Shown: one piece after another, positions 7,358 to 42,015 of the stretch
Layout of the letters: each line of letters opens with the position of its first letter
Numbering within the stretch: the first letter of the stretch is position 1
Source: Rhodosorus marinus CCMP1338
Taxonomy: Eukaryota > Plantae > Rhodophyta
NCBI GenBank assembly: GCA_029953675.1
Contig: JAMWBK010000002.1
Coordinates: 2,108,001 to 2,172,000, forward strand
Direction of reading: 5' to 3'
Length of the DNA: 64,000 nt
Position numbers and translations under genes: made by a program
Notes under the pieces: model-generated
Told to the model about the DNA's origin: nothing
Seen by the model: only the letters and a program-made list of their open reading frames with translations
Databases searched by the model: none

Positions 7358-7361
7358 TCAA

Positions 7362-7731: not shown

Positions 7732-7799
7732 TAGGCGCTTTGCGCGTGGACCAGCTGGAGAATCCGCTGGTGCCTGTTTTTTCTTTTGAATGTAGCATG

Positions 7800-7910
7800 A
7801 GACCCCGGTAGCGGGGTTCCAGTAAGTTTCTCCCTAGATAGGATTAGACGCAGTGTTGCGCTGCAGTAGGCAGCTGCCCAGCAAAGCTTACGGTTACTTA
7901 GACCACATAT
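7800..7910 (-). pseudogene. Fragment of a ZIP-paralog 3' end plus 3' flank
   Basis: Reads VTVSFAGQLPTAAQH; similar over ~75 bp to 41941-42015 and to 43790-43890. Confidence 0.55.
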
Positions 7911-7985
7911 CCTAGTCGTCGGACCGTGGTCGATGTGCAGCTTGACCAGACCATTTCCTAACGGGAACTTCATGTAGTTGACCGT

Positions 7986-8165
7986 CCGTTTATTCAGAAC
8001 CTAAATAATCAGACAGGCGAGAAACAAGACGCTGATGACGCACGTCCAACAATAAAGCAGCGTTTGAACGCCAGAGGGTTAAAGACATCTCCGTGAGGAG
8101 GCTTTAAGACGCCCTGGGTTGTTCCAAAGAGCGCACGAAACTAACGAGAACCTACCTTGGAACCC
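7986..8165 (-). mobile_element. CRE-like subfamily B 3' fragment (degenerate)
   Basis: CCGTTTATTCAG terminus followed by sequence homologous to 7390-7540. Confidence 0.75.
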
Positions 8166-8329
8166 TGCACTATCAACTAAACCACAGCACTAGATGATGA
8201 GCGGAGCAAACCGGTAGGACAACGCAGTTTGTGTAGGTCATTGTCCTCACACCCCAAGCTCTCGCCCCTCTGTGCATGTGGTTTCTGAGCTCTTCTTAAA
8301 TCATTTAGTTTATACCGTTTAAACCTTTT

Positions 8330-8410
8330 ACACTGTTTTTTACACTTTTTACACTTTGTTTACAATTTTTAACACTTTTCACACTTTGTTTACAATTTTT
8401 AACACTTTTT
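8330..8410. repeat. T/AC-rich tandem/low-complexity repeat (TTTTACAC core; ~32-bp higher-order unit x2)
   Basis: ACACTTTGTTTACAATTTTTAACACTTTT occurs twice. Confidence 0.8.
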
Positions 8411-8459
8411 GCTCGCGTAATTTTTTATTTGGTACCCCTCTAGTGTAGCCCCCCTTGAC

Positions 8460-8912
8460 CCAGAGCCTATGCAACTTAAAGAGCGTAAAGGGAGACGCTA
8501 CGCGTCTACCAACAAAGCAGCGAGCGAACGCCAGAGAATAAGAGACAGCTCCGTGAGGAGGCTATCAAGACGGCCGGGGGGATTGCTAAAATCACGACGA
8601 AGCCACCGAGAAGCGACAATGTTCAAGACCAAAGCACTCGATGATTAGCGGTACAAACCGATGAGACAGCACCAAGTCCACTGGATGATTCATCGCCTCA
8701 GCGTACTGATACTCCTTCAGTCGTCGCATTGAACCAGCGGCAGCACCACGAGGTTGCGCAGACGTGGGGAGATATCGCGCAGCTTGAGGACAAGGAATAG
8801 ACAAGTCAAGATAGTACCTCCGGGGAGCAGGCAGGTTAGTGACCATCAAATTCGCCACACGCCGGACAAAAGGTGTCTCATCAGCAGCCTCAAGCGGCCG
8901 AGCAACAGACAA
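8460..8912 (-). mobile_element. Divergent CRE-like RLE fragment (subfamily C)
   Basis: VANLMVTNL..YYLDLSIPCPQAARYLP..LKEYQY..FVPLIIECFG; its 3' end differs from A/B. Confidence 0.8.
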
Positions 8913-8959
8913 AGGGACCTCGTAGTCTGATGACGAGACATCTATTGTCCAGCGCGAGA

Positions 8960-9330
8960 GATCTGTTGGTAAACGTACAATTAGGCATCCACGCTTCTGC
9001 GTGTGAGCAGATCATCGCACTAATCAAGCGTCCCTTGATGATGGCCAGGTTATCTTCTATTTTTGTACCTTAGTTCGTCCAAGGAAACCGCGCTTCTACG
9101 CCTGGATCTGAACAACGCATTCAACCGCGTTGACGATCGGGACCTTGCTAAAAAGGTTGTACGCTGTTTTCCAGAACTCCTGCCCTACCATCGGCTGATG
9201 TACCCTCCCTCCGTCGCCAACCAACCATTTGTGACGGGCGAAAGGAAGGATCCAACAGCTGCCTTACAATGCGCCAAGGAGCACAACAAGCAGACCCGCT
9301 TGGTCCGATCCTATACCTGCACTGGCTCTA
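8960..9330 (+). mobile_element. Degenerate CRE-like reverse transcriptase fragment
   Basis: VQLGIHASACEQII..LRLDLNNAFNRV..FPELLPY (QxGxG..CE and DxxNAFN motifs). Confidence 0.75.
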
Positions 9331-9755: not shown

Positions 9756-11412
9756 TTACTCGTTCAGGAGCATATCGTCCACAGTAAAGTCGAAGTCAGC
9801 ACTGCCTTTTCCGCTGTCTTGAAACTCTTTGAAGCCCTCCTCAATAGCGGCCTCGAGTCCATGCGTGTTTTCCCATCCGAGGAGAGACATGGCCTTCCCA
9901 GGGTTGGCGAAAAAGTGTTGGTTTCTGAACGGGAAGAATTTCTTGAGCTTTCGGTTTTTAAAACCAGGTTGAAGTTGAAAGAAAAACAGGAAATCGAGAA
10001 AGGTTTTGCATGAGCTGCTGAAAGGGTATGTCAAGGCTTGGGAATAGAAACTTGTCCTATGTGCACAATCAGACATCACGGATTTCTTCCCTACCTCTAC
10101 AGTGAGTTTTTCTGGCTCGAAGTTAACAATCTCAGCCTCCATGCCAGTCGCCTTCGCACACAGCTTGGCAACCCCTGAGTGAGTCACATATCTAAGAGGG
10201 CGCAGAATCTCGAATTAGAACGTTCCCACAGCATCATCCTTTTGCCAGCATCCCCATTTGCAAGAAGGTCAGTCTAATAGACAGTTCGACAAACGTACCT
10301 GGGAGACACAACATTGAAAATCTCCTTCGAAGCATTCTCGTTTCCAACGGCATCCACTAGCATGGAAGCAACGTCTCCGACATGCGTGACTGAGGTCATC
10401 TGATCGCCTAGGTTTGCAAGCGGATCTGCAAATTTCAATATGTCTGCGATGGAGTGCAAGCTGATTCTATTGGGAACTCACCACTACCCGGGAGCAGCAC
10501 TGGCCGCTTCCTCACAATTCTGTGGAAGAAGTAGTCCAAGTAGTCTGATTTTGCAGCCTTGGGCCCGACAATATAGATTGGCCTGAAGGAGCTGTAGTTC
10601 AAACCGGAAGATTCCAGCAGCTTCTCAACAGCAACTTGACCTGCCTTCTCGTTAACGGGATCCCCAACTTGCAGCGGAACCTCATCGCTCTTCTTGTAAA
10701 TGCCGCAGCTGCTCACGTATAAGAATTGCTCGACTCCAGTTCCTGTCCAAGGAGAGACGAGAACGAACTCTCAGAAAGACCGGGGTCTACAAATGAGGAC
10801 CATAAATACAAACAAGAATCAGGTCATGAAAGGGGATCCCTAAAAGGATCTTACCAGTCGCATGCTTTACCATCGGTGTGATCTCCTCAGCGGATTTGGA
10901 GAAATTCTCAATGATGACTGAGAATTTTTTAGCGAAAGCCTTTTCGATGTCTGCGCCGACATCTTCGCTTGTCGGATCTCCGTAGGCAACGGACACTCCC
11001 TTTGCGGTCAGATCTCCATAGGAAGCGCAGGGGTTCTTTTTGGTAGCTTTCTCCTCCTCGCCGGCGTTGTAGATTGAGACCTCATGCCCTTTTGCTACAA
11101 GTTGATCCGCGAGATGGTAGCCAATGAACGCGTGACCGCCTGAGGGAGCGTTTACAATCAACACATCGGCCATGTTCCATCTCGCCGTCAGACCGCGTAC
11201 CTTGTCAGCCGAAACCCTGGCACCCACAAATTGGCTCTAAAACAAGAAACATTCAAACTCCAATGAAGTCAGCTTCACCAGAGCAGACACACGCGCTTGC
11301 CCGCATCGAAAGCGCATCCAGCAAATCCTTTTTCAACTGGCCCATTGCTCACCTTCGCTGGTCCACCAACGGATTTCCCCAAACCCAAACCGACACCCGT
11401 AACAAAGGCCAT
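9756..11412 (-). CDS. CSP41a: Chloroplast stem-loop-binding protein of 41 kDa a (extended SDR/NAD-dependent epimerase fold), multi-exon
   Basis: MAFV transit peptide (ATG at 11412); VLIVNAPSGGHAFIG, SFRPIYIVG, FFHRIVRKRPVLLPGSG, FPFRNQHFFANP and LLGW match the CSP41a family. Exact splice sites are inferred. Confidence 0.9.
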
Positions 11413-12419
11413 CACGAAAACAGAAACAACCACAGCCCACAGCTCATTCAAACACAAAGAACCTTCAGCTCTCTCCACAACCCCCTTTTGATCTACAAAC
11501 AGCCTTCCCCCGAATCCAATCCTCACTGGATATCTCTACAAGACTCTACCAACCTCCCTCCACAGACCTGCACCAGATCGTATCCATTCCTCCCAGGAAC
11601 AAACCAAACCTCCCCCCTCCCTCCCCCCGCAAGGAAAAAATCACCAAAAATACTTTCAATCGTCTTTTTTTCCCTTTTCACACAATTCCAGATCAATTTC
11701 AATATACACCATGGGGCAACAATATTAAATCAGTGAGAATCTACATGTTTGCTTCACCCCCCCTAGGAGGTAGTTGGAGAAAACTGCTACTCCCGATCAT
11801 TCATTCGCTTCGATAGAAACTCGATAGGAGCCCCCCGACAGATTGTATCTTAAAAAGAATTCAGTAGCTCAATATTTAGTAATTTTGAATCAGTGAATTC
11901 TTTGAGATTGGAGTTTGTTTTTAAAAAACATTTTTGGGGTAGTGTGGTTTGGAGGAACTGCCAAGCAAGGTGGATGTCCTTGGGACAGTGAAAGGGGAAG
12001 GAGGCTCTAAGCAGCACCAGCTGCGCGACTATGAACCGTACGTCTACAAGGCTATGTTATGGTCTGTCTACTGGCGATTTTTTTGGACTTTAGAGCGCCC
12101 CTTCAAGTCCGCATTTTCAAGGTGACGAAACCGCTCCACTTAGAAAAGTTCGAGTCTAAGGACTGAATAAACGGATCGTTATCATGGACTCTAGATCCGT
12201 TTATTCAGAGCCTAACTACCCTGAGAAGCGAGAGACAAGACGCTCATGACGCCTGCGAGGTATCTTTCGCAACGACCCAGGGCGTCTAGATAATCTGCTC
12301 ACGGAGCTTTCTTTGACTCTGTGGCGCTCAAATGCTGCGGTGTATGTAGGGGCGCGTCATAAGCATCTTGTCTCTCGCTTCTCAGGGTAGTTGTTAGGCT
12401 CTGAATAAACGGATCGTTA

Positions 12420-13263
12420 ATGACGCGCGTCCAACAATAAAGCAACGTTGGAACGCCACAGGGTTAAGGTCCACTTACGTGAGGAGGCTATCAAGACGAT
12501 CTGGGTTGTTTCGAAAGAGCCCACAAACCCAACGAGAACTTGCACTATCAACTAAACCGAAGCACTCGATGATGAGAGGAGCAAACCGATAGGACAAAGC
12601 CGAATCGCGAAGCGTAGAGTAGACTCTACGCTCTAACATAGCCGCAGCGTACTGGGATTCCTTCAGTTGCCGCAGAGACCGAGCTGCAGCGCCTCGGCGT
12701 CGGGCAGCCGCTGGCAGGTATCTGGTAGCCTGAGGATACGGGATAGAAAGGTCGGCGTACTCACTCCGACGAGCACTCAGATCCGTGACCACTAGGTCCG
12801 CCTCCCTTTGTACCACCGGGGCGTCAGCCTCATCAGTAGTTGCCGTTGCCACGGGCAGGGGGACCCCATACTCCACCTCCCGGTCCATGCCCAGCACCAG
12901 AGAACGAAGATAGCGGAACAGCAACCTGTTGAGCCGCTTATGGCGCGAGTCCGGACCTGCGGACGAGATGCCAACAAGTGCCCTCCAAAGTCACCGCAAG
13001 GCACTGAGTCGCCGCACAGGTTACATCTCGAATTCCTCTCCGCAGGCCATGCTGGTTTTGGCTACACCGATGAACGTTACGCTTCCAAGAACCATGACCC
13101 TGCTAGCTGCCGAGATCCAGAACCTGCTCCTCTCTGTCTCGGAGAACTTGCACGCAGATTGTTCGCCTTCCCTCGCCCGCGCCGCCACATGCCACGGAAT
13201 CCAACTACTGAACCCGAGTCCTGTGCAACGACCTATACCGTCAACTGAGACGGCCGAAGACAA
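12420..13263 (-). mobile_element. CRE-like subfamily B copy (zinc knuckle + RLE)
   Basis: CNLCGDSVPCGDFGGHLL and the RLE ORF at 12475-12924. Confidence 0.85.
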
Positions 13264-13287
13264 CCCACCACGGCTATTAACCCTGGT

Positions 13288-16216
13288 GATCCGTTTATTC
13301 AGAGGCTAACTACCCTGAGAAGCGAGACACAAACTAGACGCTGATGACGCGCGTCCACAAACAAAGCAGAATTGGAGCGCCACAGGGTCAAAGAAAGCTC
13401 CGTGAGCAGACTATCTAAACGCCCTGGGTCGTTACGAAACAGAGCTCGCAGCCAGCGAGAACCTACACTATCTATCAAGCCAAAGCACTCAATAATGAGG
13501 GGGACGAACCGGTATGTCACCGCCGAATCGCGAAAGGTAGGGTTTGACATCGCTGCCGTGTACTGCGAATCTTTCACTTGCCGCATAGACCGAGCTGCAG
13601 CTCCTCGACGCCGAGCCGACGCAGACAGGTACCTGGTCGCCTGGGGTTGACGCCGAGGACAAGGGATGGAGAGATCAATGTACTCACTGCGACGCGATTG
13701 AGGTCAGTCACAACGAGATCCGCCACCCGCTGTACCGCGCGTGGGGCGTCACTCTCATCAGCAATTTCCGATGCCACCGCCAGAGCGACCTCATACTCTA
13801 CTTCTCGGTCCGTACCGAGCTATTGAGAACGAAGGGAGCGGAAAAGCGGTTGAGCCGCGTATGGCGTCTGGTCCGGGCCCCTTGAACCTCCGCACAAGAC
13901 GCCAACAGATGCGCACAATAATCACCCCACGGCACATTGGCACAATGCGCATCTAGAATCCCGCTCAACAGGCCAAGGGAGTTGCGGCAAGCCCCGGTAA
14001 AGTCGTAAGCTTACACGAAGGTGCTGTTGCGGCTGAAACATCAGTTCCCGCGGGTCCGTGCGGTCGCCTTCGGGCCACGATTTGTCACCTTGGGTGCCGA
14101 GAGCCACACCTTTGCGGCTCATACGGGTGTGCAGCAGGGCGATCCCTTAGGGCCGTTCCTGCACGCCTGTGGATTGCAACTGGTGGTGTTGCGGCTGAAA
14201 CATCAGTTGATGATGATCAGTTCCCGCGGGTCCGTGCGGTCGCCTTCCATGACGATGTGACGCTTCTTGGCACTCCCCACGATCTGGTGCCGGCCTACGA
14301 TTTTCTCGGCGAGGTGGCTTGCTTGGTGGGGCTGCGTATCAACCATGCCAAGTGCGATTTCTCGGGGGGGGTCTCACTGCACCGCGGACGCGGTTCCATC
14401 CAGGTTACGAGATATTTGGCGAGCTGAGGGCTTACAGAAGTTCGGTGTCCCCGTAGGCACCCCGATATTTGTTGAACGCAGCCTCTCCGCGCTCCTGAGT
14501 TATCATGATGAGCTCCTGACTGAGCTGTGCAGTCTCCCCGAAGGGTACCTCCAGACCCCTCTGCTCATCTTCCGGTTCAGCGCGTGCCAGAAGCTGACCT
14601 ATTTTTTGTGGCAGCTACCCTCCGGGTCCCCACAAGACCCCCGTCTTGGCTGGCGCTCCAGGCAGACCGACGAGCGAGGGAAGTGCTAGGCACGCTGATG
14701 GATGCTGAGCTATCTGTTTTGGGGGATGCAGAAAAGGACGTCCTTCACCGGCAGATCGCGTTGCCCGTGCGGTTGGGCGGGCTGGTGGGATCTTCTCCGG
14801 CGATCCAGCCGGCGGCTGTGGTGAGTTCGTGGGCCAATGCGCTTTATACATGGTCCACCGATTGTGATCCGCATGTGAGTGGTTGTTGAGTGGACTTCGG
14901 GTTGGGCGGCTGGACGGGACTCTCGCCCCACGGCTCGAGGGGGTTTCTTCGGAACTGGAGGCCGCTTTTCAAGAATGTACCGCCCTGCCGAGTGGTACCC
15001 AGGCTCGTTGCGATTCCTGGGCGGCAGTTCTTGACTCCCTCGGTGGCCAGCTTTCGCGAGTCTCTGCTGCAGCACCGTGTGTTGGAAATGGTGTAGAAAC
15101 TGCCGAGGATATTGACGCCGTGCCTGTGCCGTCGAGACCGCCAGAGGACGGCGTTTCCCGGTCGGGTCCGACCCCTTCGAGGACCGATGTAATCCAAAAA
15201 ACCCTTTCGTGGGACATACATCGGAACTCGTATGCCACCCTTCTGAGTTTACCTTCGTGCTCGGCGTCGACTTTGGCTCGCCTGCGCGGTTTAGGGGGGA
15301 GTCTGCTCCCGTTTCTTCACGGTCATACCTGCGTGCGTATCCACGGTTGGCGCTTACCGATCTCGAACTTCGTGTAGGCTTACGACTTTACGTGGGCTTG
15401 CCGCAACCCCCTTGGCCTGTTGAGCGGGATTCTAGATGCGCATTGTCCGGGGCCAATGTGCCGTGGGGTGATTATGGTGCGCATCTGTAGGCGTCTTGTG
15501 CGGAGGTTCAAGGGGCCCGGACCAGACGCCATACGCGGCTCTACCGCTTGCTTTTCCGCTACCTTCGTTCTCAATCGCTCGGTACGGATCGAGAAGTGGA
15601 GTATGAGGTCGCTCTGGCGGCGGCATCGGAAATTGCTGATGAGAGTGACGCCCCAGCGGTACAGCGGGTGGCGGATCTCGTTGTGACTGACCTCAATGCG
15701 CGTCGCAGTGAGTACATTAACCTCTCCATCCCTTGTCCTCAGGCGACCAGTTACCTGCCTGCGTCGGCTCGGCGTCGAGGAGCTGCAGCATGGTCCATGG
15801 GGCAAGTGAAAGATTCGCAGTACGCGGCAGCGATGTCAAACCCTACCTTTCGCGATTCGGCGGAGTCATATCGGTTCGTCCCTCTCATTATTTAGTGCTT
15901 TAGCTTGATAGATAGTGTAGGTTCTCGCTGGCTGCGAGCTCTGTTTCGCAACGACTTAGGGCGTTTAGATAGTCTGCTCACCGAGCTTTTTTTGACCCTG
16001 TGGCGCTCCAATTCTACTTTGTTTGTGGACGAGCGTCATCAGCGTCTTGTCTCTCGCTTCTCAGGGTAGTTAGCCTCTGAATAAACGGATCATCAAGTTC
16101 GAGATCGGTAAGCGCCAACCGCGGATACGCAGGTATGACCGTGAAGAAACGGGAGCTGAAACTCCCCCCCAAACCGCGCAGGCGAGCCAAAGTCGACGCT
16201 GAGCACGAACGTAAAC
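13288..16216 (-). mobile_element. Subfamily A host copy (13288-14020 + 16095-16216) split by a nested insertion
   Basis: The sequence stops at ..TTACACGAAG (14020) and resumes at AAGTTCGAGATCGG (16095); 3-bp duplication AAG. Confidence 0.85.
14021..16094 (+). mobile_element. Subfamily A copy, RT mid-region to 3' tail (nested, frameshifted)
   Basis: GVQQGDPLGP, FHDD, zinc knuckle, RLE, then SG*-AATAAA-(ATC)2. Confidence 0.9.
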
Positions 16217-17650
16217 GCCCGTGTTTCTTTAATGCTTTATTTTGATCGTTTCTCGGTGGAATCCCTCGCCCCTTCGGATCTCCTTGGCGCTCGCTCGCGC
16301 AGAGGACATTCTGACCTTGGCGGTTTCGGCCCATTTTGAACGGCTTTCAAGGGTTCAGAAAAACCTGCTAGATCGGCTCCCAAATAGGGGTTCCTCCATG
16401 CTGCGGTCCAAGATTTCCCCGCCTCGGAAACTTCGCTTTTGGAGAATCAACCTGACTTTGCTCAGGTGTTTCCCGCTGGGCGTCCTTCTGTCGGTGCGGA
16501 GCCTTGTGACGACGTGGGGGAACTACCCTCTATGGATGTGAATGTCGATCCAGAGGTGGACACGCTCGCCATTGAGCCGAGTACCCCTTCGCCCTTTGGC
16601 GTCCAGGGGAGGGTCTCCGGCTCCTGAGGGGCTGCTATCTATGCATCCTTATCCTCTTTGCGTGCCCCTCCGCTCAAGCGCCCCTTCTTGGCGCCAGTTG
16701 CGGGGGGAAATTCTTCTGATTCCGTCGCGGATTCGCATCGCGTGGACGCTTCCTCCGTGGTGAGGGAGCAGGATGTCTGAGTCTTTTAGGGAACATTGCG
16801 AGCTTGCTGCTTTCTTTCCGAGCCCAGGTAGCTTTGAGGGCTGGCGTTCTCGTCTTTTCTCTTGGTTCGAAGGTTTTGTTGGGCGTTTCCTTCTGGGGAT
16901 ATCCCTCTTTGCCTTCGTTCGCCCCCAGTCTCTCTCCCTCATCGTTTGCGCAGGAGGGTTTCTTTTCTTTTGGATTTCCTGCTTATGGAGGTGGCCGACC
17001 ATCCTCAAGCAGCACTTGCTTGGAAGCTTTTGTTTTGTTTTTTCTCGGCTAGTGCTCACGGTCTCCCAGGGGCGCGATGCATGTCCAATTAGACGCAAAG
17101 TTCAGTCTTTTCTGGCGGGGGACTATGCTTTCTTAAAATATTTATACCTCGCTAATGTCTCTTCTTCCTCTTCGTGCTGGACTTCACCCTCTTCTCGTTC
17201 CCGTAGGCAGGTACGGGCAAAGGCAGCAGTGGCACAGGGGGATATTCGGAGTGGGGCGGCCATCGTCCAGCAAGGCGCTTCAGTCGAGCCGTATCGGACT
17301 GGCCGGGCTGATCCAGTCGCCGCGTTGTTCCCTGCGCGCGACGTGAGTTGCAACTCTGAGTTCCAGCGTGTTTAGTAGGATCTAAAGATCCTTTTGTCAA
17401 TTCCTCACGCGGTAGGGGTCGGTTGCTTGTTCGGCCGGATGAGGTTCAGGCTCTGCTCCGGTCCCCCGGAAAGGTCGTGCACCTGGTCCCTCAGGACTCC
17501 GGGTCGAACTTTTTCACTGGTTGGGTGAAGAAGGGCTGGACGCCCTTGCGCGGGTACTGGAGGGTCTTGTCAATGGGGACGATTTTTGCGCAGAGGCCTG
17601 GGCACTATTGTCGCGCTCCCAACTGGTCCTCTCGCCCAAACCTGGACATT
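16216..17650 (+). mobile_element. Probable 5' part of the CRE-like element (N-terminal region and RT domains 0-1)
   Basis: ..RAKAAVAQGDIRSGAAI..AALFP..RKGRAPGPSGLRVELF..LLSRSQLVLSPKPG; frameshifted. Assignment to subfamily A is inferred. Confidence 0.8.
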
Positions 17651-18059
17651 GGACCACAGCATGGAGGAACCCCTATTTGGGAGCCGATCTAGCAGGTTTT
17701 TCTTAACCCTTGAAAGCCGTTCAAAATGGGCCGAAACCGCCAAGGTCAGAATGTCCTCTGCGCGAGCGAGCGCCAAGGAGATCCGAAGGGGCGAGGGATT
17801 CCACAGAGGAACGATCAAAATAAAGCATTAAAGAAACACGGGCGCGTGTCAAAACTTAATTCGCTAAAACAGGTCTCTGCGCAGGAGCGTTTTCAACAAA
17901 GTAGATAGGATTTGGTGCGCAGTATCTGTTTAGATAGTCTGCTCACGGAGCTTTCTTTGACCCTGTGGCGCTCCAATTCTGCTTTTTTGGTGGACGCGCG
18001 TCATCAGCGTCTTGTCTCTCGCTTTTCAGGGTAGTTAGCCTCTGAATAAACGGATCATC

Positions 18060-18946
18060 ATGTGTCGCCGGGACTTGTATGTGACCCTTCTGAGTTTACC
18101 TTCATGCTCGGCGTCGACTTTGGCCCGCCTGCGCGGTTTGGGGGGGAGTCTCAGCTCTCGTTTCTTCACGGTCATACCTACGTATCCGCGGTTGGCGCTT
18201 ACCGATCTCGAACTTCGTGTAAGCTTGCGACTTTACCAGGGCTTGTCGCAACCCCCTTGGCCTGTTGAGCGGGATTCCAGATGCGCATTGTGCGGGGCCA
18301 GCCAATGTGCCATGGGGTGATTATGGTGCGCATCTGTAGGCGTCTTGTGCGGAGGTTCCAGGGGCCCGGACCAGACGCCATACGCGGCTCTACCGCTTGC
18401 TTTTCCGCTACCTTCTTTCTCAATCGCTCAGTACGGACCGAGGAGTGGAGTATGAGGTCCCTCTGGCCGCGGCATCGGAAATTGCTGATGAGAGTGACGC
18501 CCCAGCGGTACAGCGGGTGGCGGATCTCGTTGTGAATGACCTCAATGCGCGTCGCAGTGAGTACATTGACCTCTCCATCCCTTGTTCTCAGGCGACCAGG
18601 TACCTGCCTGCGTCGGCTCGGCGTCGAGGAGCTGCAGCACGGTCCATGGGGAAAGTGAAAGATTCGCAGTACACGGCAGCGATGTCAAACCCTACCTTTC
18701 GCGATTCGGCGGTGACATACCGGTTCGTCCCCCTCATTACTGAGTGCTTTGGCTTGATAGATAGTGTAGGTTCTCGCTGGCTGCGAGCTCTGTTTCGCAA
18801 CGACCCAGGGCGTTTAGATAGTCTGTTCACGAAGCTTTCTTTGACCCTGTGGCGCTCCAATTCTGCTTTGTTTGTGGACGCCCGTCATCAGCGTCTTGTC
18901 TCTCGCTTCTCAGGGTAGTTAGCCTCTGAATAAACGGATGATCATC
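18060..18946 (+). mobile_element. Subfamily A 3' fragment (zinc knuckle + RLE + tail), preceded by a ~130-bp 3' fragment at ~17926-18059
   Basis: RLE ORF 18397-18918 ending RFSG*; tails at ~18060 and ~18946. Confidence 0.9.
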
Positions 18947-19804
18947 TAGAATCCCGCTCAACAGGCCCTTTGACCCCTTTGGGTTGCGGCAAGCCGAGGT
19001 AAAGTCGAAAGCTTACACGAAGTTCGAGATCGGTAAGCGCCAACCGCGGATACGCAGGTTTAACCGTGAAGAAACGGGAGCTGAGACTCCCCCCCAAACC
19101 GCGCAGGCGAGCCAAAGTCGACGCCGAGCACGAACGTAAACTCAGAAGGGTGGCATGCGAGTCCCGATGTATGTCCCATGAAAGCGTTTTTTGGATTACA
19201 TCGGTCCTCCAAGGGGCCGGACCCGACCCGGAAAACCCCGGTCGGGTCGGGTGTTTGCCCTCCTTTGGCGGTCTCGACGGCACAGCCACGGCGTAAATAT
19301 CCTCGGCAGTTTCTACACCATTTCAAACTCACGGTGCTGCAGCAGAGACTTCGGAACGGTGGCCACCGAGGGAGTCAAGAACTGCCGCCCAGGAATCGCA
19401 ACGAGCCTGGGTACCACTCGGCAGGGCGGAACATTGTTGAAAAGCGGCCTCCAGTTTCGCAAAAATCCCCCTGAGCCGTGGGGCGAGAGTCCCGTCCAGC
19501 CGCCCAACCCGAAGTCTACTCAACAAACCACTCACATGCGGATCACACTCCGTAGACCATGTATAAGCGCATTGGCCCACGAACTCACCACAACCGCCGG
19601 CTGGAGCACCGCGTAAGATCCCATAGCCAGCCCGCCCAACCGCACGGGCAACGCGATCTGCCGTTAAAGGACGTCCTTTTCTGTATCCGCCCAAACAGAT
19701 AGCTCAGCAGCATCCATCAGCGTGCCTAGCACGTCCCTCGCTCGTCAGTCTGCGCAGAGCGCCAGCCAAGACCCCCACTCGGAGGGTAGCTCCCGCAAAA
19801 AATA
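18944..19804 (-). mobile_element. Subfamily A internal fragment (post-RT region)
   Basis: Reverse complement matches ~14620-15440. Confidence 0.85.
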
Positions 19805-19811
19805 CGAACTT

Positions 19812-22800
19812 GATGATGATGATCCGTTCATTCAGAGGCTAACTACACACTGAGAAGCGAGACACAAGACGCTGATGACGCTTGAAAACAAGCAAAGCAG
19901 AATTGGAGCGCCACAGGGTCAAAGAAAGCTCCGTGAGCAGACTATCTAAACGAGCTAGGTTCTCGCTGGCTGCAGAGCTCGCAGCCGGCGAGAACCTACA
20001 CTATCTATCAAGCCAAAGCACTCAACAATGAGGGGGACGAACCGGTATGTCACCGCCGAATCGCGAAAGGTAGCGAAGCATTGTGGATGCCGGCGAGCCG
20101 CTTTATATCGCGTCAGCTCACTAGGGAAGCCAGGGCTTTTTTTGGGTTGACCCAGGTCGGTGTCGGCTATTCAGGTGGCTGTGAACTGGTGACGCGTATC
20201 CTGCAGCTGGACGGTCTCCGCGATGAGCCCTTGGGCACGCTTTCTGTGGATTTCGCGAACGCATTTAACAGTGTGTCTCGAGCGCACGCGCTTGAGGTAG
20301 TTCGTCAGCTTTTCCCCTCTGGCTTTCCGTTCTTACGCCGCCGCGTCTATGATGAAGCGCCGAACGGGCCCCGATTTGTCACCTTGGGTGCCGAGAGCCA
20401 CACCTTTGCGGCTCTTACGGGTGTTCAGCAGGGTGATCCCTTAGGGCCGTTCCTGCACGCCTGTGGATTGCAACTGGTGCTGTTGCGGCTGAAACATCAG
20501 TTCCCGCGGCTCCGTGCGGTCGCCTTCCATGACGATGTGACGCTTCTGGGCACTCCCGACGATCTGGTGCCGGCCTACGATTTTCTCGGCGAGGTGGCTT
20601 GCTTGGTGGGGCTGCATATCAACCACGCCAAGTGCGACTTCTGGGGGAGTCTCACTGCACCGCATCCAGGTTCCGAGATATTTGGCGAGCTGAGGGCTTC
20701 CTTCTGTTCGGTGTCCCCGTAGGCACTCCGATGCTTGTTGAACGCAGCCTCTCCGCGCTCCTGAGTCATCATGATAAGCTCAGTCAGGAGCAGTCTCCCA
20801 GAAGGGTACCTCCAGGCCGCTCTGCTCATCTTCCGGTTCAGCGCGTGCCAGAGGTTGCCCTATTTTTTGCGGCAGCTACCCTCCGAGTGGGGGTCTTGGC
20901 TCGCGCTCTGCGCAGACTGACGAGCGAGGGACGTGCTAGGCACGCTGGTTGATGCTGAGCTATCTGTTTTGGGGGATGCAGAAAAGGACGTCCTTCATCG
21001 GCAACTCGCGTTGCCCGTGCGGTTGGGCGGGCTGGCTGTGGGATCTTACGCCGCGATCCAGCCGGCGGCTGTGGTGAGTTCCTGGGCCAATGCGCTTAAT
21101 ACATGGTCTACGGAGTGTGATCCGCATGTGAGTGGTTTGTTGAGTGGACTTCGGGTTGGGCGGCTGGACGGGACTCTCGCTCCACGGCTCGGGAGGGTGT
21201 TTTCGGAACTGGTGGCCACTTTTCAACAATGTACCGCCCTGCCGAGTGGTACCCAGGCTCGTTGCGATTCCTGGGCGGCAGTTCTTGACTCCCTCGGTGG
21301 CCAGCGTTCGTGAGTCTCTGCTGCAGCACCGTGTGTTGGAAATGGTGTAGAAACTGCCGATGATATTGACGCCGTGGCTGTGCCGTCGAGACCGCCAGAG
21401 GACGGCGTTTCCCGGTCGGGTCCGGCCCCTTCGAGGACCGATGTAATCCAAAAAACCCTTCCGTGTGACATACGTCGGGACTCGTATGCCACCCTTCTGA
21501 GTTTACCTTCGTGCTCGGCGTCGACTTTGGCTCGCCTGCGCGGTTTAGGGGGGAGTCTGAGGTCCCGGTTCTTCACTGTCATATTTGCGCATCCGGGGCT
21601 TGCGCTTGCCGATCTCGAACTTCGTGTAAGCTTACGACTTTACGTGGGATTGCCACAACCCCCTTGGCCTGTTGAGCGGGATTCTAGATGCTCATTGCGC
21701 GGGGCCAATGTGCCGTGGGGTGATTATGGTGCGCATCTGTTGGCGTCTTGTGCGGAGGTTCAAGGGGCCCGGACCAGACGCCATACGCGGCTCTACTGCT
21801 TGGTGTTCCGCTACCTTCGTTCTCAATCGCTCGGTACAGACCGAGAAGTGGAGTATGAGGTCGCTCTGGCCGCGGCATCGGAAACTGCTTATGAGAGTGA
21901 CGCCCCAGCGGTACAGCCGGTGGCGGATCTCGTTGTGAATGACCTCAATCGCGTCGCAGTGAGTACATTGACCTCTCCATCCCTTGTCCTCAGACGACCA
22001 GGTACCTGCCTGCGTCGGTTCGGCGTCGAGGAGCTGCAGCACGGTCCATGGGGCAAGTGAAAGATTCGCAGTACGCGGCAGCGATGTCAAACCCTACCTT
22101 TCGCGATTCGGCGGTGACATACCGGTTCATCCCCCTCATTATTGAGTGCTTTGGCTTGATAGATAGTGTAGGTTCTCGCTGACTGCGAGCTCTGTTTCGC
22201 AACGACCCAGGGCGTTTAGATAGTCTGCTCACGGAGCTTTCTTTGACCCTGTGGTGCTCCAATTCTGCTTTGTTTGTGGACGCGCGTCATCAGCGTCTAG
22301 TTTATGTCTCGCTTCTCAGGGTAGTTAGCCTCTGAATAAACGGATCATAAAAGGTAGGGTTTGACATCGCTGCCGCGTACTGCGAATCTTTCACTTGCCC
22401 CATGGACCGAGCTGCAGCTCCTCGACGCCGAGCCGACGCAGGCAGGTACCTGCTTGCCTGAGGATAATGGATGGAGAGGTTAATGTACTCACTGCGACGC
22501 GCATTGAGGTCAGTCACAACGAGATCCGCCACCCGCTGTACCACTGGGGCGTCACTCTCATCAGCAATTTCCGATGCCAACCGCCAGAGCTACCTCATAC
22601 TCCACTTCTCGTTCGTACCGAGCGATTGAGAACGAAGGTAGCGGAAAAATAAGCGGTTGAGCCGCGTATGGCGTCTGGCCCGGGCCCCTTGAACCTCCGC
22701 ACACCACGCGTACAGATGCGCACCATAATCACCCCACGGCACATTGGCCGGCCCCGGACAATGCGCATCTAGAATCCCGCTCAACAGGCCAAGGGGGTTG

Positions 22801-23100
22801 CGGCAAGCCCAGGTAAAGTCGTAAGCTTACACGAAGTTCCAGGTCGGTAAGCGCCAACCGCGGATACGCAGGTATGACGGGAACTCTTGAAGAAAGCGAC
22901 GCGCGTCATCAGCGTCTTGTCTCTTGCTTCTCAGGGTAGTTACCTTCTGAATAAACGGATCATCATCGGTGTGACCGTGAAGAAACGGGAGCTGAGACTT
23001 CCCCCAAACCGCGCAGGCGAGCCAAAGTCGACGCCGGGCACAAAGGTAAACTCAGAAGGGTCGCATACGAGTCCCGATGTATGTCCCACGAAAGGTAACC
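19812..23100 (-). mobile_element. Subfamily A host copy (19812-20073 + 22350-23100) carrying nested insertions
   Basis: Interrupted at AAAGGTAG (20066-20073), which is duplicated at 22350-22357; a second insertion at 22879-22967 has TSD GGTATGAC/GGTGTGAC. Confidence 0.85.
20074..22349 (+). mobile_element. Longest subfamily A copy, RT to 3' tail (2.28 kb), with 8-bp TSD
   Basis: ORF 20081-20722 carries QVGVG, DFANAFN, QQGDPLGP and FHDD; RLE follows, then the tail; TSD AAAGGTAG. Confidence 0.92.
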
Positions 23101-23276
23101 CGAACTTGATCATCCGTTTATTCACCCGAACTTGATGACCCGAAGTTCGTGTACGCTTACGACTGTACCTGGGGTTCGTGCAAAACCCTTTGTGAATAAG
23201 CGGATCATCAACCCCTTGCCCTGTTGAGCGGGATTCTAGATGTGCATTGTCCTGGGCCAATGTGCCGTGGGGTTAC

Positions 23277-24170
23277 GATGATCCGTTTATTCAGAGGCTA
23301 ACTACCCTGAGATGCGATAGACGAGACGCTGATGACGCGCGTCCACAAACAAAACAGAATTAGAGCGCCACAGGGTCAAAGAAAGCTCCGTGAGCAGACT
23401 ATCGAAACGCCCTGGGTCGTTGCGAAACAGAGCTCGCAGCCAGCGAGAACCTGTGTAGGTTGCGAGCTCTGTTTCGCAACGACCCCTTCATAGATAGTGT
23501 TAGCTATCAAGCCAAAGCACTCAGTAATGAGGGGGACGAACCGGTATGTCACCGCCGAATCGCGAAAGGTAGGGTTTGACATCGCTGCCGTGTACTGCGA
23601 ATCTTTCACTTGCCGCATGGACCGAGCCGCAGCTCTTCGACGCCGAGCCGACGCAGGCAGGTACCTGGTCGCCTGAGAACAAGGGATGGAGAGGTCAATG
23701 TACTCACTGCGACGCGCATTGAGGTCATTCACAACGAGATCCGCCACCCGCTGTACCGCTGGGGCGCCACTCTCATCAGCAATTTCCGATGCCGCGGCCA
23801 GAGCGACCTCATACTCCACTTCTCGGTCTGTACCGAGCGATTGAGAACGAAGGTAGCGGAACAGCAAGCGGTTGAGCCACGTATGGCGTCTGGTCCGGGC
23901 CCCGGACAATGCGCATCTAGAATCCCGCTCAACAGGCCAAGCGGGTTTCGGCAAGCCCAAGTAAAGTCGTAAGCTTACACGAAGTTCGAGATCGGTAAGC
24001 GCCAACCGCGCATACGCAGGTATGACCGCGAGGAAACGGGAGCTGAGACTCCCCCCCAAAACCGCGCACGCGAGCCAAAGTCGACGACGAGCACGCAGGT
24101 AAACTCAGAAGGGTGGCATACGAGTCCCGATGTATGTCCCACGAAAGGGTTTTTTGGATTACATCGGTCC
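23277..24170 (-). mobile_element. Subfamily A 3' fragment with an internal inverted duplication
   Basis: GATGATCCGTTTATTCAG terminus; RLE ORF 23376-24059; hairpin at 23414-23485. Confidence 0.85.
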
Positions 24171-24198
24171 TCGGTCCAGCCGGCGGCTGTGGTGAGTT

Positions 24199-24487
24199 AA
24201 TGATGCGTTTATTCAGAGGCTAACTACCCTGAGAAGCGAGAGACAAGACGCTGATTATGCGCGTCCACAAACAAAGCAGAATTGGAGCGCCACCCTGTGG
24301 CAGGTCAAAGAAAGCTCCGTGGCAGACTATCTAAACGCCCTGGGTCGTCGTAGCCAGCGAGAACCTACACTATCTATCAAGCCAAAGCACTCAATAATGA
24401 GGGGGACGAACCGGTATGTCACCGACGAATCGCGAAAGGTAGGGTTTGACATCGCTGCCGCGTACTGCGAATCTTTCACTTGCCCCA
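24199..24487 (-). mobile_element. 289-bp subfamily A 3' fragment with 9-bp TSD TGGTGAGTT
   Basis: TSD at 24190-24198 and 24488-24496 inside a + strand copy. Confidence 0.88.
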
Positions 24488-25076
24488 TGGTGAGTTCGGC
24501 CAATGCGCTTAATACATGGTCTACGGAGTGTGATCCGTATGTGAGTGGTTTGTTGAGTGGACTTCGGGTTGGGCGGCTGGACGGGACTCTCGCCCCACGG
24601 CTCCGGGGGGTTTTTGCGGAACTGGAGGCTGCTTTTCAACAATGTACCGCCCTGCCGAGTGGTACCCAGGCTCGTTGCGATTCCTGGGCGGCAGTTCTTG
24701 ATTGACTCGGTGGCCAGTGTTCGGGAGTCTCTGCTGCAGTACCGCGTGTTGGAAATGGTATAGAAACTGCTCAGGATATTGACGCCGTCGCTGTGTGGTC
24801 TAGACCGCCAGAGGACGGCGTTTCCCGGTCGGGTCCGGCCCTTTCGAGGACCGATGTAATCCAAAAAACCCTTTCGTGGGACATACATCAGGACTCGTAT
24901 GCCACCCTTCTGAGTTTACCTTCGTGCTCGGCGCCGACTTTGGCTCGCCTGCGCGGTTTGGGGGGGCCTCGGCGTCGATTTTGGCTCGCCTGCACGGTTT
25001 GGGGGGGAGTCTCAGCTCCCGTTTCTTCACGGTCATACCTGCGTATCCGCGGTTGGCGCTTCCCGATCTCGAACTT

Positions 25077-26435
25077 GATGATCGGTTTATTCAGAGTCTA
25101 ACTACCCTGAAAAGCGAACACAAGACGCTGATGACGGTCGTCCACAAACAAAGCAGAATTGGAGCGCCACAGGGTCAAAGAAAGCTCCGTGAACAGACTA
25201 TCCAAACGGCCTGGGTCATTGCGAAACAGAGCTCGCAGCCAGCGAGAACCTACACTATCTATCAAGCCAAAGCACTCAATAATGAGGGGGACGAACCGGT
25301 ATGTCACCGCCGAATCGCGAAAGGTAGGGTTTGACATCGCTGCCGTGTACTGCGAATCTTTCACTTTCCCCATGGACCGTGCTGCAGCTCCTCGACGCCG
25401 AGCCGACGCAGGCAGGTAACTGGTCGCCTGAGGACAAGGGATGGAGAGGTCAATGTACTCACTGCGACGCGCATTGAGGTCAGTCACGGCGGGATCCGCC
25501 ACCCGCTGTACCGCTGGGGCGTCACTCTCATCAGCAATTTCCGATGCCACCGCCAGAGCGACCTCATACTCCACTTCTCGGTCCGGACCGAGCGATTGAG
25601 AACGAAGGTAACGGAAAAGCGGTTGAGCCGCGTATGGCGTCTGGTCCGGGCCCCTTGAACCTCCGCACAAGACGCCAACAGGTGCGCACCATAATCACCC
25701 CACGGCGCATTGGCACAATGCGATCCCCCTTAGGGCCGTTCCTGCACGCCTGTGGATTGCAACTGGTGCTGTTGCGGCTGAAACATCAGTTGATGATGAT
25801 CAGTTCCCGCGGGTCCGTGCGGTCGCCTTCCATGACGATGTGACGCTTCTTGGCACTCCCGACGTTCTGGTGCCGGCCTACGATTTTCTCGGCGAGGTGG
25901 CTTGCTTGGTGGGGCTGCGTATCAACCATGCAAAGTGCGATTTCTGGGGGGGGGTCTCAGTGCACCACGAAGTTCCATCCAGGTTCCGAGATATTTGGCG
26001 AGCTGAGGGCTTCCTTCTGTTCGGTGTCCCCGTAGACACCCCGATATTTGTTGAACGCAGCCTCTCCAAGCTCCTGAGTCATCACGATTAGCTCCTCCTG
26101 ACTGAGCTGTGCAGGATCCCAGAAGGGTACCTCCAGACCGCTCTGCTCATCTTTTGGTTCAGCGCGTGCCAGAGGCTGACCTATTTTTTGCGGCAGCTAC
26201 CCTCCGAGTGGGGGTCTTGGCTGGCGCTCCGGGCAGACCGACGAGCGAGGGATGTGCTAGGCACGCTGATGGATGCTGAGCTATCTGTTTTGGGGGATGC
26301 GGAAAAGGACGTCCTTCACCGGCAGATCGCGTTGCCCGTGCTGTTGGGCGGGCTGGCTGTGGGATCTTACGCGGCGATCTAGCCGGCGGCTGTGGTGAGT
26401 TCGTGGGCCAATGCGCTTAATACATGGTCTACGGA
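25077..26435. mobile_element. Subfamily A 3' fragment (-; 25077-~25720) joined to an inverted RT fragment (+; ~25721-26435)
   Basis: RLE ORF 25098-25670 on -; QGDPLGP/FHDD segment on +. Confidence 0.8.
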
Positions 26436-26583
26436 GTGAGACCGGTCATCGCGGTCTCGCCCAGCCACCCAAACCCTTCCAGGCCGATTGGGAAAAAGTC
26501 GTTCAAGTGCCAGAGGACTCCAGCATACTTACGGATCTTCCGATGAGCGGCGTGATTAGCGGCGACGCCCTGGCTTTCACCTT

Positions 26584-27780
26584 GATGATCCGTTTATTCA
26601 GAGGCTAACTACCCTGAGAAGCGAGACACAAGACGCTGATGACGCTCGTCCACAAACAAAGCAGAATTGGAGCGCCACAGGGTCAAAAAAAGCTCCATGA
26701 GCGGACTATCTAAACGCCCTGGGTCGTTGCGAAACAGAGCTCGCAGCCAGCGAGAACCTACACTATCTATCAAGTCAAAGCACTCAATAATGAGGGGGAC
26801 GGACCGGTATGTCACCGCCGAATCGCGAAAGGAAGGGTTTGACATCGCTGCCGCGTACTGCGAATCTTTCACTTTCCCCGTGGACCGAGCTGCAGCTCCT
26901 CGACGCCGAGCCGACGCAGGCAGGTACCTGGTCGCCTGAGGACAAGGGATGGAGAGGTAAATGTACTCACTGCGACGTGCATTGAGGTCAGTCACAACGG
27001 GATCCGCCACCCGCTGTACCGCTGGGGCGTCACGCTCATCAGCAATTTCCGATGCCACCGCCAGAGCGACCTCATACTCCACTTCTCGGTCCGTACCGAG
27101 CGATTGAGAACGAAGGTAGCGGAAAAGCAAGCGGTTGAGCCGCGTATGGCGTCTGGTCCTGGCCCTTGAACCTCCGCACAAGACGCCAACAGATGCGTAC
27201 CATAATCACCCCACGGCACATTGGCCCCGCACAATGCGCATCTAGAATCCCGCTCAACAGGCCAAGGGGGTTGCGGCAAGCCCACGTACGGTCATAAGCT
27301 TACACGAAGTTCGAGATCGGTAAGCGCCAACCGCGGATACGCTGGTTTGACCATGAAGAAACGGGAGCTGAGACTCCCTCCCAAACCGCGCAGGCGAGCC
27401 AAAGTCGACGCCTAGCACGAAGGTAAACTCAGAAGGGTGGCATACGAGTCCCGATGTATGTCCCACGAAAGGGTTTTTTGGATTACATCGGTCCTCGAAG
27501 GGGCCGGACCCGACCGGGAAATGCCGTCCTCTGGCGGTCTAGACGGCACAGCCACGGCGTCAACACCCTCGGCAGTTTCTACACCATTTCCAGCACACGG
27601 TGCTGCAGCAGAGACTCGCGAAAGCTGGCCACCGAGGGAGTCAAGAACTGCCGCTCAGGAATCGCAACGAGCCTGGGTACCACTCGGCAGGGCGGTACAT
27701 TGTTGAAAAGCAGCCACCAGTTCCGCAAAAAACCCCCCGAGCCGTGGGGCGAGAGTCCCGTCCAGCCACCCAACCCACCC
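26584..27780 (-). mobile_element. Subfamily A 3' fragment (~1.2 kb)
   Basis: Tail at 26584; RLE ORF 26609-27181. Confidence 0.9.
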
Positions 27781-28460
27781 GTGCGTTGTACTATGGCATC
27801 TGGTAGGGGACTTGCTACGGGGATATGGAAGAGCAGCAATTGTTTGGAGACAGGATGGATAGCCTGAATATATGGCACCACATTCGGGTGCTCCTCACGG
27901 ACAGGCCCGGGCTCGACCAGTACCTGTTCGAATCCACACTCGCGGAGGAGCGTCGCCATTTGGCTAACGAGGTAATTGTGTCGGTAGATCCAGATTCCAC
28001 ACGTTAACGGGGAATTCTGGATTCCCTGGTATCCATACTGATCATAAGAGCGATGGCAGGATGAGCATACTTTACGGGCCGGGATCTGCGGATGCGGAGC
28101 TCCAAGCAACTGACGAATATTCGCCAGTATCTGAGATCGCGAGTACTCCGGACGATCTCTTGACTAGGGCTGTCCGTAAGGCCTTGGGTACATTGTACCC
28201 ACTGCCACCACCATACGCAGAGCGAATACGAGCACGACTGAGGACGCTGACCACGACTGAGGAGGAGGACAATCAGAACTGATGATGACCATCAGACCGT
28301 CTACAATCGCAAGGTAGGCCGAGCGATGCAGTTGATTGGCGATCAAGCGTTGGGAAAGCTTGGGAACAGGCACTGCTTCGGCAGGAGCGGAGTGACGGGT
28401 ACCAACCTTCATCTTGCTTTAATTGTTTTCCAATTTCCACGCACCTAGATGTCACCGGTT
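27780..28460 (-). mobile_element. Second RLE retrotransposon family (family D), C-terminal fragment
   Basis: ARIRSAYGGGSG, LLGAPHP..CSSC..YG..C..WIYRHNYL..LLRECGFEQVLVEPG..VASP. Confidence 0.85.
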
Positions 28461-28589
28461 TCTCCTTAGTTTTAGTCAGATACTTTCTCTCCTCCCCTAC
28501 GCTCTGTTGGCTAGTTGCGCTGTGTGGACTGGGCCTCTACCTACATCTATTTTACGGGTTCCTTTGTTGTTTTAAGGTCAACGTGACCT

Positions 28590-29403
28590 TGGTTTTAGAT
28601 CGGAATCCAAGTCAACATCATCCGGCGTACTCGCGATCTCAGATACTGGCGACTATTCGTCAGTTGCTTGGAGCTCCGCATCCCAGATCAAAGCCCGCGA
28701 AGTACGCTCATCCTGCCATCGTTCTCATGATCAGTATGGATACCATCGCTGGTAATTCGCATTCATGGAACATACCAGGGCGTCTTGATAGCCTCCTCAC
28801 GGACCTCTGAATAAACGGATCATCTGAGCGGTCCTTGACCCTCGGGCGATCCAACACTGCTTTATTGTTGGACGCGCGTCATCAGCGTCTTGTTTCTCGC
28901 AGGGTAGTTAGGCTCTGAATAAACGTATGAATCCATAATTGCCCGTTATCGTGTGGAATATGGATCTACCGCCACAATAACCTTGTCAGCCAAATGGCGA
29001 CGCTCCTCCGCGAGTGTGGATTCGAGCAGGTACTGGCCGGGCCTGTCCGTGACGATCACCCGAATGTGGTGCCATATTTTCAGGCTATCCATCCTGTCTC
29101 CAAACAATTGCTGCTCTTCCATATCACCGTAGCAAGTCCCCTACCAGATGCCATAGTACAACGCACTGCGTGAAGCCCGGGCGTCGCCGCTAATAGCGCC
29201 GCTCATCGGAAGATCCGTAAGTAGGCTGGAGTTCTCTGGCACTCGAACGACTTTTTCCCGATCGCCCTGGAAGGGTTTGGATGGCTGAGCGAGACCGCGA
29301 TGAATGGTCTCCGATCCCTCACGCGGCATCTGGATCCCAGTTCTTCCCCCTCCCACGAGCAATTGCGGCCTAAACAGATGTCGTTGGTGTCCTGTAAAAA
29401 AAA
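28590..29403 (+). mobile_element. Family D 3' fragment ending in an A8 run, interrupted by a subfamily B 3' end (~28780-28926)
   Basis: RHNNL..RECGFEQV..AAHRKIRK..FFPIALEGFG; A8 at ~29396-29403. A further family D piece lies at ~26437-26583 (-). Confidence 0.8.
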
Positions 29404-41940: not shown

Positions 41941-42015
41941 TAAGTTTTCCCCTAGATAGTAGTAGAAATAGTGATGCGCTGCAGTAGGCAGCTGCCCGGT
42001 AAAGCTTACGGTTAC
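41941..42015 (-). pseudogene. ZIP-paralog 3'-end fragment
   Basis: Reads VTVSFTGQLPTAAHH; similar to 7800-7910 and 43790-43860. Confidence 0.55.

Follow-up and report, generated by a model that had tools for sequence, protein, structure and literature searches.

A nested retrotransposon island in the red alga Rhodosorus marinus, probably built by insertion of one family into its own copies

A 64-kb stretch of contig JAMWBK010000002.1 from Rhodosorus marinus CCMP1338 (positions 2,108,001 to 2,172,000; hereafter the window, to which all counts, sites and clusters of the element refer) contains a compact block of nested transposons at 12163-29403. Most of this block belongs to a single retrotransposon family without long terminal repeats (non-LTR), here called R. 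We consider it probable that R itself built the block as a transposon island, through endonuclease-driven homing to resident R copies. A preliminary description of this DNA had proposed that the lineage uses itself (or the local chromatin) as a landing pad, and the first of these is borne out by one internal site that was hit repeatedly: six junctions fall at the same nucleotide, CACG^AAGTTCG on the R antisense strand, in three different target copies. In copy T1 the junction is that of I1, in copy T4 that of I5, and in copy X there are four, made by T2, c11 and two short inserts of 17 and 5 nt (Table 1).

Nested insertions and a favoured site within R

To compare the copies, the longest one (20074-22348, plus strand, 2275 bp) was taken as the R reference and all fragments were placed on its coordinates with blastn; tblastn with the R consensus protein gave the same fragment map. 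R accounts for 79% of the interval 12163-29403. The remainder includes family B, a second endonuclease-bearing long interspersed nuclear element (LINE), at 6.7%, and a 1.63-kb element with 196-bp terminal inverted repeats at 9.4%, bringing the transposon total to 95%. The initial view of about 17 kb made up almost wholly of one retroelement lineage is borne out.

The R 3'-end motif CTCTGAATAAACGGATC occurs 19 times in the window with three or fewer mismatches, against a chance expectation of 0.2. Seventeen of the matches lie within 12161-28929 (10 on the plus strand and 7 on the minus strand) and two lie further left, at 7368 and 7983. An additional 17-nt R 3' end at 23108-23124(-), spotted by direct reading, brings the block total to 18, in agreement with the roughly 18 termini in both orientations reported previously. 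The common 3' end is ...CTCTGAATAAACGGATCAT, followed by zero to three more CAT units, so that the length of the (CAT)n tail is variable. The 5' truncation points span R positions 1 to 2206, LTRs are absent, and every R copy in the window is dead. About 14 young copies can be recognised, all 5'-truncated and frameshifted, each with a different 5' truncation point and different flanks, and this indicates that they are separate insertions and not one rearranged segment that was copied. Four of them are truncated inside one 70-nt stretch, R positions 1359-1428 (at window positions 24173, 23095, 18066 and 16216); this shared zone could be a reverse transcriptase (RT) pause site or a favoured 5' joining point.

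Four insertions into other copies had been described as having readable duplications, and all four are exact: AAG at 14018/16095, AAAGGTAG at 20066/22350, GGTATGAC/GGTGTGAC at 22871/22968, and TGGTGAGTT at 24190/24488. When the flanks of each insertion are joined, the resulting empty site matches 4-8 uninterrupted copies in the block (0-4 mismatches or one 3-bp indel), and the interrupted target halves overlap in R coordinates by exactly the duplicated bases. Target duplications are 3-9 bp long. Of about 16 young junctions, 13 or more fall within R copies or abut them, including the six at the single favoured site. All seven nested copies whose 3' junction could be mapped in R are antisense to the resident copy, with junctions at consensus positions 1029, 1534, 1571 (twice), 1639, about 1670 and 2051. 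The exception to antisense nesting is a 20-nt mini insert in X (23190-23209), which sits in sense orientation at CGC^AACC.

These junctions also bear on whether the block came about when a few copies were segmentally duplicated and inverted, or through misassembly of repeats. The I5/c25 and c9/c10 junctions are hard to obtain by insertion alone, two loci share the same minus-copy/plus-copy layout, and there is a 41-bp tandem duplication at 24927-25007. Against this, flank and truncation point are particular to each 3' end, the duplications are exact and their empty sites verified, the two similar loci have different junctions, and the copies are 4-10% apart, which is enough for an assembler to separate them. 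We regard such an origin as very improbable. The more specific possibility that I1/T1 and I5/T4 derive from one duplicated event is excluded, as their 5' junctions and far flanks differ.

Measured against the consensus, R copies show 2-5% divergence (8.4% for one fragment) and appear similar in age. Their CpG observed/expected ratio is 1.02 and transitions are about as frequent as transversions. This low and even divergence, free of CpG loss or an excess of transitions, fits a burst of insertion, and the same two values rule out repeat-induced point mutation or methylation-driven decay of R. Inserts and targets are alike at 2-5%, and the order of insertion is not readable from divergence.

Four of the six hot-spot junctions are found in X. 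On its minus strand the order runs ...GTACACG, AACTTCGGG, TCATC, AAGTTCGGG, TGAATAAACGGATGATC, AAGTTCGGG and TTAC, after which come T2 (R positions 1384-2275, holding I2 and I3), (CAT)n, AAGTTCG and c11 (from R position 788). Direct reading of 23085-23300 and 19790-19840 resolves this as four successive insertions with a duplicated target after each. The target CCCGAA(C/G)TT appears three times in X, at 23099-23107, 23125-23133 and 23139-23147; between these repeats lie the 17-nt insert (23108-23124, minus strand) and the 5-nt insert, which consists of tail only (23134-23138). The junction in which a tail is followed by AAGTTCGAGATCGG... ends both I1 in T1 and I5 in T4, and is the same as in X. 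In its fuller form the favoured site reads CACG^AAGTTCG(A/G)G and lies on the antisense strand of the R coding sequence. Its core, CGAAGTTCG, is a 9-bp palindrome except for the central base, and all 6 occurrences of ACGAAGTTCG in the window are within R copies.

The remaining nested sites suggest a looser preference. At four of the six distinct sites CG stands directly 5' of the nick (ACG^AAG, GCG^AAAGG, ACG^AAC, GCG^CAT), and CpG makes up about 9% of R consensus dinucleotides. The consensus holds 16 CGAA tetranucleotides on its antisense strand and 4 on its sense strand, and this fourfold difference is enough to account for the antisense nesting bias. For this reason R-loop-guided targeting, in which element RNA would pair with a resident copy, displacing the sense strand and leaving it to be nicked, was set aside.

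A weak CG^AA preference might also operate within a scheme of passive accumulation, in which R inserts anywhere but, in a compact genome, is retained only where the DNA is already rich in transposons and poor in genes; nesting would then be a by-product of selection or permissive chromatin. The region from about 6.5 to 29.4 kb does hold an LTR relic, a cluster of an older R subfamily (R'), family B and the inverted-repeat element, and of 11 young 3' junctions about 2 are in non-R DNA, a proportion near the roughly 21% non-R share of the block. Selection, however, cannot yield six junctions at an identical nucleotide in three target copies. Five of the seven nested sites crowd into the interval 1500-1670 of R, which makes up about 13% of the R sequence available, and the gene-rich flank tolerates a transposon relic at 41.9-43.9 kb yet has no R copy. 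Passive accumulation on its own thus seems unlikely to us, although of the alternatives it is the one we would take most seriously.

Self-homing by R can be pictured as follows, by analogy with the established R2 mechanism. The R endonuclease would nick a resident copy on its sense strand (the bottom strand with respect to the incoming element), and the 3' end so released would prime reverse transcription from the R RNA end ...GGAUCAU(CAU)n. Synthesis would mostly halt early, giving 5'-truncated copies, and a second-strand cut 3-9 bp away would create the short duplications. Because the favoured site lies in R's own antisense strand, every copy that reaches this region is a landing pad, and as the duplication leaves the site restored on either side of an insertion, further copies can stack there head to tail. 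Looser CG^AA sites on the A-rich antisense strand would take the remaining, antisense nested insertions. In this way the island would grow from within and genes would be spared. A special host function is not required for the clustering, for which R targeting suffices, and self-homing predicts clusters wherever a founder copy landed.

Several observations weigh against this model. The four events in X were possibly repeated attempts in one integration episode, in which case three clearly independent uses of the site remain. Seven uninterrupted copies of the hot spot are still unused, and the four occurrences of GAAGTTCG outside the block carry no insertion, so that either recognition must extend past 8 bp or a regional factor is at work as well. 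A minimum of two insertions landed in non-R DNA (the T1 flank, and I6 in family B), and self-homing does not account for these founding insertions. The I5/c25 and c9/c10 junctions and the lost 3' part of c11 need extra deletions or inversions. A full-length R copy, with its N-terminal DNA-binding part, is absent, and the evidence covers a single 64-kb window of the genome. Finally, the presence of the LTR relic, the inverted-repeat element and family B in the same zone would fit a general transposon haven.

Coding capacity of R

The R consensus encodes an RT (PF00078, E 1.5e-8) with an ...LPVRLGGL... motif downstream of it. The RT region is followed by a C-x2-C-x11-H-x4-C knuckle and then by the nuclease motifs RH, E, RVAD, IDLSI, K and FVPLIIECFG, and the open reading frame (ORF) stops about 25 nt upstream of the 3' end. 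A search of a collection of 5.8 billion proteins found 129 RT homologues of R, with best identities of 24-36% among the 120 matches listed. The motif series CCHC / RH / E / R-x-AD / D / K / F-x-P-x3-E aligns with 38 of these 120 and with family B, and an alignment of 27 sequences has C3, R13, H14, D77, K107 and G138 as invariant positions. Family B carries the motifs RHN, K..KY and FFPI.LE.FG, of the same endonuclease type, and is a LINE distinct from R.

By sequence, the nearest solved proteins to R are R2 (E 1.8e-9), as against about 0.01 for LINE-1 ORF2p, and the CCHC-RHN segment of R2 aligns with its R counterpart. An AlphaFold model of the translation of 18340-18915 (predicted local distance difference test score, pLDDT, 87.7) was compared with the PDB using Foldseek. 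The top seven hits were all R2 proteins (E 3.6e-6 to 1.6e-3), and other PD-(D/E)xK nucleases ranked below them. Motif order and the predicted fold together identify R as a LINE with an R2-like restriction-like endonuclease C-terminal to the RT. LINEs with a restriction-like endonuclease are told apart from Dualen/RandI and later clades by having no N-terminal AP-type (apurinic/apyrimidinic) endonuclease. AP-endonuclease Pfam domains are found in none of the 120 listed homologues, some of which are 1091-1278 residues long, while the R copies of the window all lack the N-terminal region.

Restriction-like endonucleases are common to the CRE, R2, R4, NeSL and HERO clades (PMC4640811). As this endonuclease type is shared by five clades, R cannot be assigned to CRE by its endonuclease, and its class assignment reaches the five-clade group and no single clade within it. 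There are no Rfam families or tRNAs in the whole window, and no telomere-type tandem repeats were detected by Tandem Repeats Finder (TRF) in 1-31000, the only part scanned. The insertion targets are R itself, family B and one non-R flank. No trypanosomatid or fungal proteins are among the 120 matches listed, which is weak evidence given that the search was word-based. Taken together, the failure to find the usual CRE targets (tandem repeats scanned in 1-31000), the (CAT)n tail and the lack of trypanosomatid or fungal matches are neutral or mildly against the CRE label. The R 3' end had no match when JGI metagenome contigs were scanned for it exactly, and a protein-guided scan of JGI metagenomes with the R endonuclease domain found no relative.

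Organisation of the block and its surroundings

Self-comparison of the window limits repeated DNA to 7352-8862 and 12181-29311, plus a small unrelated repeat at 41.9-43.9 kb. The family was at first described from the block alone; the block stands, and older R' copies, of 57-80% amino-acid identity, are also present to its left at 7366-9316. These R' fragments show 66-78% blastn identity to the reference, and 37-81% by tblastn with the consensus protein. No R copy was found in the rest of the window to the right of 29311, as previously stated. At the far left margin of the block, just ahead of its first very short 3'-end fragment, 12146-12154 reads AAGTTCGAG. This near match to the hot-spot sequence may be what remains of the founding target, or it may be fortuitous.

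Table 1. Copies of R and other elements in and beside the block. Positions are those of the window; R positions refer to the 2275-bp reference.
Feature	Position	Strand	Description
R' (older subfamily), 3'-terminal fragments	7366-7677, 7985-8231, 8501-8927	-	Left of block; 3' motif at 7368 and 7983
R' RT fragment	9096-9316	+	Left of block
R' pieces at left block edge	12161-12177(+), 12194-12252(-), 12253-12415(+), 12420-13062(-)		First is a tiny 3' end; last spans R positions 1579-2217
T1, 3' part	13287-14020	-	R positions 1547-2274; 92% identical to reference; 3' end (13287) adjoins non-R DNA
Insert I1	14021-16094	+	R positions 292-2275; 52-nt rearranged 5' end; in hot-spot site of T1, duplication AAG
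T1, 5' part	16095-16216	-	R positions 1428-1549
Inverted-repeat element	16216-17844		1.63 kb; 196-bp terminal inverted repeats, 98% identical
Copy c9	17928-18058	+	R positions 2141-2275; head to tail with c10
Copy c10	18066-18942	+	R positions 1400-2275; 3' end antisense in c11
Copy c11	18938-19804	-	R positions 788-1622; 5' end preceded by hot-spot duplication AAGTTCG
T2, 3' part	19805-20073	-	R positions 2021-2275; then (CAT)n tail, duplication CGAACTT at 19805-19811
Insert I2	20074-22349	+	Longest copy in window; RT to 3' end, 5'-truncated, frameshifted; duplication AAAGGTAG
T2, middle and 5' parts	22350-23095	-	R positions 1384-2028; split by I3
Insert I3	22879-22963	+	85 bp, inside T2; duplication GGTRTGAC
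Landing-pad copy X	23099-23277	+	R positions about 1541-1650; read directly
Copy c18/19	23278-24173	-	R positions 1359-2275; 58-bp internal deletion; 3' end antisense in X
Target copy T4	24174-25076	+	R positions 983-1549; split by I4; ends exactly at hot spot; 41-bp tandem duplication has 2 copies, 92% matches
Insert I4	24199-24487	-	Inside T4; duplication TGGTGAGTT
Insert I5	25078-25714	-	R positions 1631-2275; 3' end joins T4 at hot spot
Copy c25	25715-26441	+	R positions about 362-1047; head to head with I5 5' end; may be an inverted 5' segment
Family B, left arm	26438-26584 and 27777-28168	-	
Insert I6	26585-27776	-	R positions 1080-2275; inside family B
Family B, right arm	28607-28745 and 28929 to about 29403	+	Ends in A8
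Mini R insert	28805-28821		Within family B right arm
R' 3' fragment	28826-28929		Within family B right arm

The two family B arms stand head to head, are both 5'-truncated and 89-92% identical, and have 438 bp of unrelated sequence between them. The ORFs of the inverted-repeat element have no Pfam match and the element is single-copy in the window. Within the LINE block it probably represents a DNA transposon of non-autonomous type or a foldback element. The GC content of the block is 55-59%, compared with 45-51% in the flanks. The sense strand of the R consensus is A-poor (356 A against 588 T), and as a result the AT skew of the block switches with copy orientation.

Two divergent genes border the block with their 5' sides: on the left an epimerase-like gene on the minus strand (9756-11227), and on the right a GH31 gene on the plus strand (30234-33254). 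The epimerase-like gene separates the R' cluster from the block. Further left, 6550-6783(-) is an LTR-retrotransposon RNase H relic (PF17919/PF17917, E about 1e-10) and 1-6 kb contains no long ORF, so that with the R' cluster the left 30 kb can be seen as mixed transposon DNA in which one gene is embedded. At 2950-3113, in DNA devoid of long ORFs, there is a tandem repeat with a 36-bp unit (4.7 copies, 77% matches).

Pfam matches confirm GH31, PPR, ZIP, Cid1-type poly(A) polymerase and CNOT1 genes to the right. The preliminary description of the right-hand 34 kb as gene DNA thus holds for these genes, and has to be amended by a probable copia relic at about 41.9-43.9 kb. Within this relic (41945-43853), a copia-type pol C-terminus is probable at 42902-43312 by motif reading, with no Pfam match; it is framed by two direct repeats, each some 200 bp long (42277-42476 and 43271-43515), and by inverted repeats of 72 bp, and a related 100-bp piece is found at 7801-7900. 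The ZIP metal-transporter gene (39741-41174) has a 12-bp coding repeat at 39922-40125 that gives N-terminal (D/E)(D/E)DH runs. The C-terminal exon of CNOT1 (58359-63632) has a 92% match on a 1.7-kb Logan contig (SRR32518360), the next match being 49%, and named proteins reach at most about 58%. For the GH31 protein no record exists. The host thus appears to come from a lineage of which no near relative has been sequenced.

Clusters of a single retrotransposon family mark centromeres in several lineages, and R might likewise be drawn to centromeric or pericentromeric chromatin, comparable to the Zepp-like elements of some green algae. A compact island dominated by one family in gene-dense DNA, placed between the 5' sides of two divergent genes, would suit this idea. 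Nothing in its specific support was found, however: a gene lies between the old and young clusters, and the GC content of the block is above that of its flanks. The embedded gene at 9.7-11.2 kb and the other transposon relics nearby point equally to an ordinary transposon island. A centromeric role appears improbable to us.

The antisense nests also produce long inverted repeats, with 168 inverted-repeat pairs in all (arms up to 614 nt, 93-96% identity, 1.3-12 kb apart). If transcribed, these long arms would fold into hairpins that could feed RNA interference (RNAi) against R, a role as a small-RNA source that would be compatible with self-homing. All R copies in the window are dead, and the arrays of the Cryptococcus element Cnl1 are under RNAi control (bioRxiv 10.1101/2021.08.11.455996). 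Inverted repeats nevertheless arise automatically from antisense nesting and are not in themselves proof of function, and we hold this role, though plausible, to be doubtful. Since sequence-directed self-targeting already explains the clustering, neither a centromere nor a small-RNA trap is needed to account for the block. A bolder combination, in which R is near-obligately self-homing, its endonuclease recognises CGAAGTTCG, the regenerated site lets arrays grow at one place and the inverted-repeat-rich islands serve the host as small-RNA sources or centromere cores, seems improbable to us.

Comparison with known site-specific and self-nesting elements

Self-nesting clusters of 5'-truncated copies in gene-dense genomes are formed by Zepp and ZeppL in green algae. 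Zepp belongs to the L1 clade, with an AP-type endonuclease and a poly(A) tail. In R the endonuclease is restriction-like and the tail is (CAT)n; R is not Zepp-like. In Giardia, GilM/GilT and Genie, endonuclease-bearing LINEs that are broadly of R's type, form head-to-tail arrays or insert at one site in a repeat; these arrays are telomeric tandem arrays, unlike the R block.

R2 is the nearest solved relative of R both by sequence (E 1.8e-9) and by endonuclease fold (Foldseek E 3.6e-6, query-normalised template modelling score 0.62). It has the same order of RT, CCHC and endonuclease and is site-specific, as represented by the solved structures 9dou, 9nl2/9nl3 and 8gh6. The target of R2, however, is 28S rDNA, whereas that of R is its own antisense strand, and endonuclease identity is only 14-16%. 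R differs further in its (CAT)n tail, its 3-9 bp duplications and its looser secondary site preference.

The endonuclease of the CRE clade has the layout C-x2-C...H...C / RH(D/N) / E / (R/K)(P/A)D / D-E (PMC12857005). R resembles CRE1/CRE2, SLACS, CZAR, MoTeR and FoTeR in this motif layout and in using repeated sequences as targets. Those elements target spliced-leader genes or telomere repeats, in contrast, and neither was found here (Rfam over the whole window; TRF over 1-31000).

In behaviour, R is closest to Cnl1 of Cryptococcus, although no sequence relationship between the two is established. Cnl1 is described as preferring to insert into itself and as building nested arrays (PMC9942834) of up to 80 kb that are controlled by RNAi (bioRxiv 10.1101/2021.08.11.455996), and in a published phylogeny it groups with SLACS, CRE1/2, CZAR and MoTeR, a clade bearing the same kind of endonuclease (PMC12857005). 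Mostly 5'-truncated copies, self-preferring insertion and nested arrays are common to both elements. The novelty implied in the preliminary description is therefore overstated, since self-nesting is on record for Cnl1 (PMC9942834), an element which that description itself counted in the CRE clade. R adds a new family to those that self-nest and shows this known behaviour in a variant form, and establishes no new principle.

What R adds, as an otherwise unstudied family of endonuclease-bearing LINEs, is a clean and readable example of how a site-specific LINE may make its own safe harbour. With the preferred site inside its own coding region, on the antisense strand, each copy would draw more copies and genes would be spared. 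An island of one family set in gene-dense DNA, moreover, does not have to be a centromere. R also offers a concrete and testable target for its endonuclease, namely the CACGAAGTTCG sites and the site-bearing sequence TTACACGAAGTTCGAGATCGG. R stands apart from Cnl1 in three respects: Cnl1 arrays are subtelomeric, near telomere repeats and tandem, whereas the R block is interstitial with genes on both sides; R nests mostly antisense, and in tandem only at the hot spot; and the target of R lies inside its own coding region.

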